Source: Neoechinorhynchus agilis (Eukaryota; Animalia; Acanthocephala). Taken from it: DNA of 64,000 nucleotides. A program made the translations under genes and the position numbers. Numbering within the stretch: the first letter of the stretch is position 1; every line of letters begins with the position of its first letter. The notes under the pieces are model-generated. The model was given only the letters and a program-made list of their open reading frames with translations. It had not been told where the DNA came from and ran no database searches. Below, piece by piece: positions 26,508 to 28,226 of this stretch. The stretch is taken from assembly GCA_051530055.1 (NCBI GenBank), contig CM121342.1, positions 11,237,480 through 11,301,479 of the forward strand, written 5' to 3'.

Positions 26508-28226
26508 CTAAAAATCATCACCTCTGCTAAGAATTTCTTTGCATGTAGGTCTTAGAAGTACGGTATGTTCGAATTGTGACGTGTAGCATCCTCGAATATC
26601 ACATAGAGGAGGATATTGCTCAATTACTTGATTATCAACCAAATTCTTGAGACCCATTAAATATTTAGTATCAGGCATGAGTTGATCAATCCATCTGCGG
26701 CAAAATGGAAGTGTGTCAAAGTTTCGTTTTAGAACACTAAAGAGATTTCTTGCTGCCGATAGCCGCGGTGAAAACGATTCTGAAACGGGATTTAGACTGT
26801 AGTGACTCACTTCCCCTTCGTCATGAACGAATCCTTTTCCTGTACTTCCAAAAGTTTCGATCGCATAAAGCTCTCCTTCTTCCATTCGAACATTTTCCCG
26901 CCCTTTAACAATCGGCACACACTTACTACCATGAATTTGGTATTGATTGATCATGTGACCGTGCAAGTTGCGGATTGATTTAACTCTATACGTCTTCCCG
27001 TCCAATTCAACTTCATATGATTCCATCACTTCTTGAATGGCTTCACCGATTTCTCCAACGCTAACATCAATCCCAGCTTCCTTGAGGCCAGTGTTTGTGG
27101 CATCTTTGGCGGCATTCAAGAGATTATCGTATTTGGGATTAAAAGCAACTGTAAATGCACAGTCTATTATATAGCCGTTCACGTGAGTTCCAAAATCAAT
27201 TTTACACACATCATCAACCCCTAAAATGATCTTGTCGCCTTTATTGGGGGTGTAATGAGCGGCGCAGTTATTTACACGCCAAAAATTGTCATGGTCACTT
27301 TTCAAAGAAATTTACAATTGAGGAGAGAAAATCTAATATTTCAAAAAAGACAAAAATGAATCTTAAACCTACTATGACCTACAAATGGTTACCCGATACT
27401 TTAAACAACCTCTAGCAGTTTCAACTGTGACCAAAACAAAAGGAACTTCACAATTTAGAATTGGATAAGTTTCTACGTCTTGGTCACAAATGGCGCTATT
27501 AGGTAGTTTAAAGTACTAGATGAACGCAATGTTTTAATAAAAGCGAACCTTTAAGAATATAAATGGACTATTGACATCAATGGGCAGCAAAGTTTCTCCT
27601 TTAAAAGGAAAGTTTCAAAAGGGACACAAGTTTGGGCCACAATGATCCGCAATGTACTAAAAAAGAAGATGAGTTTCACCGGATTAACAGAACAAAATGA
27701 CCATCACAATTGCTAAAGAACATCCAGTCGGAAATGCCAACCCACTTCTAAGTCCATCAGCACTAATAAGGCGACGAGCGCAATCTTCAAGCTTTTCACA
27801 GATCGACGTCATTGACATTCCGGGTGCGATCCAACTCTGTACATACTTCCTAGTCTGCCGATGCACCTCTGCAGCTCGTCTGAGATCGTTCAACATTTCG
27901 AAATTCGCTTCATCCAAAACTCGCTTTATTTCATTTTCAGGTGCCTTCACTGTGTTGTCCATCAACTTTGGATACTCTGAAATCTCTCCTTCCGGATACT
28001 TTTTGCTTGTAAATAGAACGTCAACGGGAATGGTAGGCGGATCTGTTTGCCCAAGCGGTTTCTCTTCTCCAACAGAAGCCGCAGCAGCTTTTTTCGCTTT
28101 TTGACGTTTTCGTTTTTTGGCGGATTTGGACAACGGCTGCTGTGGTGTAGTTTGTACCTCCATGGATTGTTCAAATGGTTGTTGGTCACTAGGCGACAGA
28201 TCAAGTTGATCACAAGGTTCCGTCAT
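26508..28226 (-). CDS. METAP2: Methionine aminopeptidase 2 (exons 28226-27714 and 27272-26508; 426 codons)
   Basis: Lys-rich N-terminus, [29 protein letters not shown]|[45 protein letters not shown] and [23 protein letters not shown]. Confidence 0.97.
27273..27713 (-). other. 441-nt hairpin-bounded non-canonical intron in METAP2
   Basis: Sense ends: TCTTTA|GCAATTGTGATGGTCATTTT ... AAAGTGACCATGACAATTTTTGGCGTGTA|AATAAC. 17/18 pairs. No GT-AG solution preserves GCSLNNC. Confidence 0.85.

Follow-up and report, generated by a model that had tools for sequence, protein, structure and literature searches.

The closest described relative of the arrangement reported here is SOS splicing, in which DNA transposons lying in exons are cut out of mRNAs in C. 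elegans and human cells alike, as described by Zhao et al. (Nature 2025, PMC12779559). Its substrates are Tc1, Tc3 and Tc4 in C. elegans and hsMar2 in human cells, as well as non-autonomous derivatives; the excision sites lie in or near the inverted repeats and are rarely GU-AG, base-pairing of the repeats is the trigger, and the process, which is apparently independent of the spliceosome, needs AKAP17A, CAAP1, RTCB and SUT-2 (PMC12779559). SOS splicing is heterogeneous, and gene function was rescued only with the insert in a poorly conserved region of the protein; its authors left open whether it shields genes on an evolutionary timescale, and few natural coding targets are known (PMC12779559). 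The second system is that of Fritillaria borealis (Henriet et al. 2019; Soo et al. 2026, PMC13326754), where non-canonical introns make up about 95% of the total, have AG/AC or AG/AT ends and carry YAY triplets; the species is described as exceptional for the scale of its non-GT-AG introns (PMC13326754). Our literature search turned up no account of non-canonical introns for acanthocephalans or rotifers. Here we describe a 441 nucleotide (nt) transposon-like insert in the active-site exon of the METAP2 gene of the acanthocephalan Neoechinorhynchus agilis, which lies in a 64,000 nt stretch of contig CM121342.1 (positions 11,237,480 to 11,301,479 of assembly GCA_051530055.1; "the window", whose own coordinates are used below). 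We propose, at a probability of roughly 40%, that this insert is excised from the pre-mRNA under the guidance of a helix formed by its inverted repeats, as in SOS splicing, and that the gene still works.

The METAP2 gene occupies CM121342.1:11263987-11265705 and the insert 11264752-11265192. Both coding exons are open reading frames (ORFs), and the insert splits the active-site exon on the minus strand of the window, as follows.

27714-28226, minus strand: METAP2 coding exon A, from Met1 to ...LAFPTGCSL (by translation and alignment to human METAP2)
27273-27713, minus strand: intervening element of 441 nt, whose coding strand begins GCAATTGTG... and finishes ...GGCGTGTA
26508-27272, minus strand: METAP2 coding exon B, which ends in RGDDF and a TAG stop (by translation and alignment to human METAP2)

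Joining position 27714 to 27272 (on the coding strand, GGATGTTCTTTA to AATAACTGCGCC) gives a protein of 425 amino acids (AAs) that matches human METAP2 (1b6a_A) with 542 bits and an E value of 7e-162, gap-free at the junction, and the 18-residue motif that spans the junction and includes GCSLNNCAAH is identical in the joined and human proteins. Read-through of 27273-27713 would instead continue exon A with AIVMVILFC and then TAA, a stop after 9 codons.

The insert lies between METAP2 codons 171 and 172, in a strongly conserved stretch: in an alignment with 33 diverse METAP2s (from a sponge, a placozoan, cnidarians, molluscs, a nematode and vertebrates; 34 sequences with that of N. agilis) positions 163-170, 172 and 174-181 do not vary and 171 hardly does, and the run of 19 invariant or near-invariant positions at the junction contains no insertion or deletion in any of the 34. 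This diverse set replaced an earlier count of deviations against the 120 best matches, which was skewed by an excess of vertebrate sequences. In human METAP2, fumagillin modifies the histidine of the junction motif, an active-site residue. The gene looks maintained. At 139 of the 150 columns without variation among the 33 other proteins, N. agilis METAP2 has the shared residue; it agrees with human METAP2 at the conserved NNCAAH, KIDFG, IIDCAF, GH, AIETFG and QFEH motifs, and has no second lesion in any of its 426 open codons. No N. agilis protein occurs among the 120 best METAP2 matches in a database that includes N. agilis proteins, so that no annotated, closely similar intact paralogue is visible within the cut-off of that list and the length filter that the search apparently applied. 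Exact look-ups of the joined 425 AA protein and of a version with 15 additional AAs (see below) were both negative, and the best relatives in metagenomes reach 64% identity. An AlphaFold2 model of the joined protein was unusable for placing the junction, with a mean predicted local distance difference test score (pLDDT) of 62.7 and values below 50 at residues 167-183.

An earlier reading of this DNA from its letters alone (the sequence-only reading) had called 27273-27713 an intron, and had concluded from the intact exons that purifying selection acts on the gene and that the insert is really removed. The split and the intact exons are confirmed. The step from intact exons to selection and removal does not necessarily follow, since a recent disabling insertion looks the same, and "intron" may be wrong in kind, since the process that the insert most resembles is apparently not spliceosomal.

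Conventional splice signals offer no satisfactory way out of METAP2. All in-frame, stop-free joins were enumerated with donors from -45 to +120 nt of the end of exon A and acceptors from -120 to +45 nt of the start of exon B, and this gave 2,099 joins, seven of them GT-AG and two GC-AG. Eight of these nine remove the His motif or replace AFPTGCSL, so that part of the conserved motif is lost, and none of the nine gives an intact conserved motif with U2-type GT-AG or GC-AG boundaries. The sites that matter in the comparison are these.

27714-27715, minus strand: upstream copy of a TA direct repeat, the last two bases of exon A
27273-27274, minus strand: downstream copy of the TA direct repeat, the last two bases of the insert
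27298-27693, minus strand: the one GT-AG intron (GTTCTG...AAAAG) whose removal would preserve the two halves of the motif; it leaves 45 nt in the message

The last of these, an intron from 27693 to 27298, would place 15 extra residues between the L and the N of the motif, against the figure of about 16 given in the sequence-only reading. The motif is restored in three registers only, TA..TG, AG..GT and GC..TA; none of them is GT-AG, and the three are equivalent because of the TA direct repeat. These are the registers that the same reading had listed, and the enumeration bears out both that list and its statement that the boundaries of the insert have no usable GT-AG pair. AT-AC joins alter the conserved motif and none is credible, and U12 signals (a 5' ATATCC box and a TCCTTAAC branch site) are absent from the 5' sequence ATTGTGATGG and from the last 30 nt of the insert. 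The insert is also long, 441 nt against roughly 40-70 nt for 19 introns of a SERCA-type gene in the window (below); longer GT-AG introns do exist here, for example one of 526 nt in PSMD1.

The origin of the insert as a transposon, probably a miniature inverted-repeat transposable element (MITE), is well supported by three of its features: the TA direct repeat, a significant inverted repeat, and an internal segment that has a second copy in the window.

27694-27711, minus strand: 5' arm of the inverted repeat (AATTGTGATGGTCATTTT), set 2 nt in from the boundary, part of the closing helix in the RNA fold
27284-27301, minus strand: 3' arm of the inverted repeat (AAAGTGACCATGACAATT), set 11 nt in from the boundary, part of the closing helix in the RNA fold
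27366-27466, strand unassigned: internal repeat segment of 101 nt, 95% identical to 24326-24426 in opposite orientation
24326-24426, strand unassigned: second copy of the 101-nt repeat, directly upstream of a retroelement fragment
27397-27515, strand unassigned: imperfect internal palindrome, a hairpin in the predicted RNA fold

The arms are complementary at 16 of 18 positions by Watson-Crick pairing and at 17 of 18 as RNA with one G-U pair, as had been noted from the letters alone. A terminal inverted repeat of this quality was found in 13 of 20,000 random 441-nt segments of the window (p ~6e-4) and in none of 20,000 shuffled sequences. Fold predictions for the RNA show the terminal helix as the closing stem of the insert, in the minimum free energy (MFE) and the centroid structures alike, and the MFE of the insert region, -125.8 kcal/mol, compares with -102.7 +/- 5.7 for shuffled sequences (z = -4.06). 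The arms are placed asymmetrically, with 2 nt between arm and boundary at the 5' end and 11 nt at the 3' end, and given these offsets one end of the insert is extended or rearranged. The 95% identity between 27366-27466 and 24326-24426 places at least some of the insert in a repeat family; the segment at 24326-24426 is the one related copy within the window, and a third, weaker copy of the arm motif lies at 27438-27455, inside the 101-nt segment. TA is the target-site duplication (TSD) of Tc1/mariner elements. The TA repeat alone is a weak sign of such an element, yet it fits the other features of the insert, and the MITE origin at which it had hinted in the sequence-only reading now draws support from the inverted-repeat statistics and the repeat copy.

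A 33-mer taken from the 101-nt repeat had no match in metagenome contigs, and Rfam (at gathering thresholds) and a tRNA scan gave no matches in the window. A 33-nt inverted match between 26264-26296 and 27273-27305 was considered as another element end, was not confirmed and is treated as chance. Retroelement ORFs lie at 17780-21248 (plus strand), with motifs that, read by eye, may represent a GIY-YIG endonuclease of the Penelope-like kind, and two diverged copies of a related fragment lie at 14352-15079 (minus strand) and 24450-25242 (plus strand); the 101-nt repeat is found a short way upstream of the second of these copies. Foldback or MITE-like palindromes with arms 83-95% complementary are present at 29173-29370, 56453-56759, 20097-20268, 13968-14176, 13659-14104, 576-703 and 29007-29114, which points to a genome rich in short inverted-repeat elements. 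A GCC/GGC-rich inverted repeat with 24-nt arms that are 83% complementary lies at 60583-60670.

The sequence of events that we favor would be the following. A non-autonomous DNA transposon, probably a Tc1/mariner-like one that targets TA, would have entered a TA in the METAP2 exon that encodes the active-site strand, where it would now persist as a composite of repeat pieces. In the transcript its inverted arms would pair into an 18-bp helix that encloses the 441-nt insert, the TA-flanked ends would thereby meet at the base of the stem, and the RNA would be cut at that point and its ends ligated, with no GU-AG signals involved. Of the routes described so far SOS splicing comes closest, with inverted-repeat pairing as the trigger and AKAP17A, CAAP1 and the RTCB ligase as its factors, and at least part of the product would be the exact TA-to-TA join that restores the 18-residue motif. 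Excision of the SOS type seems to us the most likely route for METAP2 because the insert is exonic, its arms close the element, and the junction deduced from conservation lies at the base of the helix. The removal, its occurrence at the RNA level and its machinery are all three things that we infer. None of the genes for AKAP17A, CAAP1 and RTCB lies in the window.

Other genes in the same window are interrupted in a similar manner, and most of its mapped introns are conventional. A SERCA-type Ca2+-ATPase gene at about 48800-52790 (minus strand), mapped against its homologues over about 48800-52733, has 19 introns of roughly 40-70 nt, every one of them GT-AG; 19 is a minimum for the gene, whose start-codon exon lies further upstream, outside the mapped part. 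Its donors are loose, with GTTAAA, GTTTGC and GTACTT all present. Because all 19 are short GT-AG introns, the N. agilis genome is not Fritillaria-like. A source in Fritillaria or another larvacean, which the non-canonical ends had suggested, is rejected on the same ground and by the 100% match of a PSMD1 fragment encoded in the window to a GenBank protein of N. agilis. By comparison, all five long interruptions of conserved genes (METAP2, two in PSMD1 called PSMD1a and PSMD1b here, THOC3 and Rad9) carry near-terminal inverted repeats, with p values against random segments of 0.0002-0.017 each. The four besides that of METAP2 are as follows.

30860-31385, plus strand: PSMD1a, a 526-nt in-phase GT...AG intron whose inverted arms lie 4 and 6 nt in from the two ends
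33328-33479, plus strand: PSMD1b, a 150-nt interruption of PSMD1/Rpn2 with inverted arms at 33331-33343 and 33464-33476
36596-36977, plus strand: a 378-nt interruption of THOC3 that is flanked by TAGA direct repeats and has its inverted arms at 36602-36614 and 36959-36971
5206-5572, plus strand: a long interruption of Rad9 with CTA direct repeats and arms at 5245-5263 and 5552-5570

PSMD1a looks like a transposon-derived canonical intron of the introner type. PSMD1b is a candidate second non-canonical case, moderately constrained by its protein sequence: 22 of 22 homologues share the spacing LA[FY]xP[TS]-5 residues-N, which is kept only by removing 150 nt, from 33328/29/30 to 33477/78/79 (TA..CA, AA..AC or AG..CA), while a GT-AG option at 33337-33480 costs two additional residues. 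Its arms begin 1-3 nt inside the putative junctions and are paired in the MFE fold. Removal of 378 nt from THOC3 allows alignment to human THOC3 without a gap, a result less constrained than that for METAP2; one of the five equivalent registers is AT-AG, and the GT-AG option at 36612-36953 would add 8-9 residues just before a WD-repeat motif. In Rad9, taking out the 324 nt between the CTA repeats stays in frame and GT-AG options are also present; the annotation has a GT-AG intron of 357 nt here, at the cost of WFDIFFEE, a segment that can be aligned to a strand of human RAD9A. Conservation is too poor to fix the boundaries at the Rad9 junction and in the middle of PSMD1. The putative junctions of these companion interruptions likewise lie at the base of the arm helix. 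We suggest only tentatively, and with considerable doubt, that N. agilis has a fixed class of TA-bounded inverted-repeat inserts in the exons of core genes (METAP2, PSMD1 and perhaps THOC3 and Rad9) that are removed exactly from mRNA, guided by RNA structure and without GU-AG signals.

The provenance of the assembly and its annotation bear on how the insert is read. The 46.2 Mb N. agilis assembly was made from DNA of a pool of about 50 worms and of single females, as a hybrid MaSuRCA build of pooled Oxford Nanopore Technologies (ONT) and Illumina reads with gap closing, and was annotated with BRAKER2 and mRNA-seq; a Trinity transcriptome of 74 worms accompanies it (PMC12690905). The 74 RNA sequencing (RNA-seq) libraries (PRJNA1223661) and the Trinity assembly (Zenodo 10.5281/zenodo.17199078) are public. 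The METAP2 insert is likely to be common or fixed in N. agilis because the assembly is a consensus from this pool and the single females. The window contains no Ns. About 45% of metazoan BUSCO genes are reported as lost in N. agilis, and BUSCO completeness is 47.1% and 58.4% for the genome against 54.9% and 71.0% for the transcriptome (PMC12690905); the lower genome values would fit genes whose parts the gene finders fail to join. We examined the public annotation over the locus identical to window positions 21499-43427 (GCA_051530055.1). It gives METAP2 as two genes, one whose 172 AA product begins at a Met within exon B and one with a 182 AA product in which exon A runs into the stop in the insert, and across 26508-37965 the models break at the long interruptions, METAP2 into two, PSMD1 into three and THOC3 into two. 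Several of the fragments in these BRAKER models have starts that are ab initio artefacts: PSMD1 is given a 63-nt intron within its coding sequence, and THOC3 a first exon of 4 nt. Because the models are partly ab initio their unjoined fragments count for little.

Several points weigh against an SOS-like excision from METAP2. The main tension is that SOS splicing is imprecise, while the invariant active-site strand would require an exact join; possible outcomes are that the functional product is only a fraction of the total, that the local sequence has become refined, or that other machinery is at work. The METAP2 arms are 18 nt long, against 54 nt in Tc1, and are offset 2 nt and 11 nt from the ends. 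The extent of BUSCO loss makes a freshly disabled gene plausible. Rad9, THOC3 and PSMD1 each have a GT-AG alternative at a cost of -1 to +9 residues, and METAP2 may be the only truly non-canonical case among the interruptions.

Next to excision guided by the helix, we regard a disabling insertion as the account most worth weighing, possible although doubtful: a transposon would recently have knocked out METAP2, and the gene would be in the course of being lost, or a segregating null allele would have been assembled. A young exonic insert automatically leaves two intact half-ORFs and a frame that is restored by taking out the element and one TSD copy, the 95% identity of the repeat copy allows that the family was active recently, and METAP1 might take over the function of a lost METAP2. 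The gene losses reported for the species and the two METAP2 fragments of the RNA-seq-guided BRAKER annotation, with exon A running into the stop, point the same way. Against this, an assembly from about 50 pooled worms should not yield a null allele of a strongly conserved gene, and there is neither a further lesion in 426 codons nor much departure from the invariant positions (139 of 150 retained). Similar interruptions of PSMD1, THOC3 and Rad9 within the same 64 kb would also have to be disabling, and four dead genes are not credible, least of all PSMD1/Rpn2, which we take to be essential. These points do not amount to proof. An intron of the Fritillaria type, in which a relaxed N. agilis U2 spliceosome would excise a MITE together with one TSD copy exactly, for example in the AG..GT register, seems unlikely to us. 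The F. borealis U2 spliceosome does remove MITE-derived AG/AC and AG/AT introns (PMC13326754, PMC11282704), an AG start is possible in METAP2, THOC3 and PSMD1b, and such splicing would supply the exactness that the METAP2 motif demands. But the 19 SERCA introns are all short and GT-AG, as against only about 5% GT-AG in F. borealis, YAY triplets are missing (the METAP2 AG register reads TTT/AG...TGT/), the 3' ends GT, TT and CA share no common pattern, and Rad9 has no AG register.

The remaining explanations are less probable still. Ordinary GT-AG splicing from 27693 to 27298, which would leave 45 nt in the message and a 15-residue insertion beside the catalytic His, is improbable: it is the sole canonical in-frame, stop-free join with both halves of the motif, and the loose donors of the SERCA gene would accommodate it, but the extra residues would interrupt the 19-position run that is free of insertions and deletions in 34 sequences, and BRAKER, which had RNA-seq hints, did not use this intron. 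We give even less credit to removal at the DNA level, in which the element would be cut from the chromosomes exactly at TA in tissues that express METAP2, like the internal eliminated sequences (IESs) of ciliates. TA boundaries with one copy retained are the signature of ciliate IESs, and RNA-seq by itself does not distinguish such removal from splicing; however, we know of no animal system of programmed exact TA excision from DNA, excision of Tc1/mariner elements usually leaves footprints, and the assembly, made from whole worms, holds the filled site. Least probable of all is an assembly artefact, with METAP2 uninterrupted in the real chromosomes. A hybrid MaSuRCA assembly in which pooled ONT and Illumina reads were combined and gaps closed (PMC12690905) gives some opening for one, but the insert lies exactly between two codons, is flanked by TA and has transposon-like ends, the window is free of Ns, and the same architecture recurs in other genes.

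The METAP2 insert is thus either removed from the message in an unconventional way or the mark of a gene that has just been disabled. If the wider class of inserts suggested above is real, its members would be "SOS introns" that occur in nature and are stable in evolution, Fritillaria being the other animal lineage concerned, and would show a way for exonic transposons to become permanent intervening sequences. As the public gene set breaks METAP2, PSMD1 and THOC3 at these inserts, part of the reported N. agilis gene loss could reflect gene finders that accept canonical introns only. If the insert is merely a knock-out, METAP2 is an ordinary young pseudogene. With a common or fixed transposon in an invariant strand, a genome of 46 Mb and 74 RNA-seq libraries, the evolutionary role of SOS splicing and the exceptional standing of Fritillaria are both questions that can be addressed by read mapping.

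Among known systems the insert is probably an addition, in a new phylum, to the kind formed by SOS splicing substrates and the MITE introns of Fritillaria. It resembles the former in being a DNA transposon in a coding exon, with inverted repeats that can pair and non-GU-AG ends near those repeats. It differs in that METAP2 needs an exact join in an invariant strand whereas SOS splicing is imprecise, in its 18-nt arms as opposed to the 54 nt of Tc1, and in being apparently common or fixed rather than a laboratory allele. With the MITE introns of F. borealis it shares its location in an animal gene, inverted repeats, TSDs, the lack of GT-AG, and the restoration of coding sequence when the element and one TSD copy are removed. 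It differs from them in its genomic setting, which is dominated by short GT-AG introns (19 of 19 in SERCA), and in having ends that match neither AG/AC nor AG/AT.

The nonconventional introns of euglenids are similar to the METAP2 insert in their variable borders, TSD-like repeats at the junctions and near-terminal pairing that joins the ends; their hosts are protists, and their pairing of positions +4..+6 with -8..-6 (CAG/CTG) is not seen in METAP2. Introners, like this insert, are MITE-like elements tolerated in exons, and the 526-nt PSMD1 intron (30860-31385) is of this type, but introners bring or co-opt a GT and an AG, and the METAP2 element has neither at a usable place. The IESs of Paramecium, finally, have TA at both boundaries, one copy of which is kept after removal, and like the METAP2 insert they probably descend from Tc1/mariner elements. 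IESs are removed from the DNA of the ciliate macronucleus, whereas the METAP2 insert would, on the reading that we favor, be removed from RNA.

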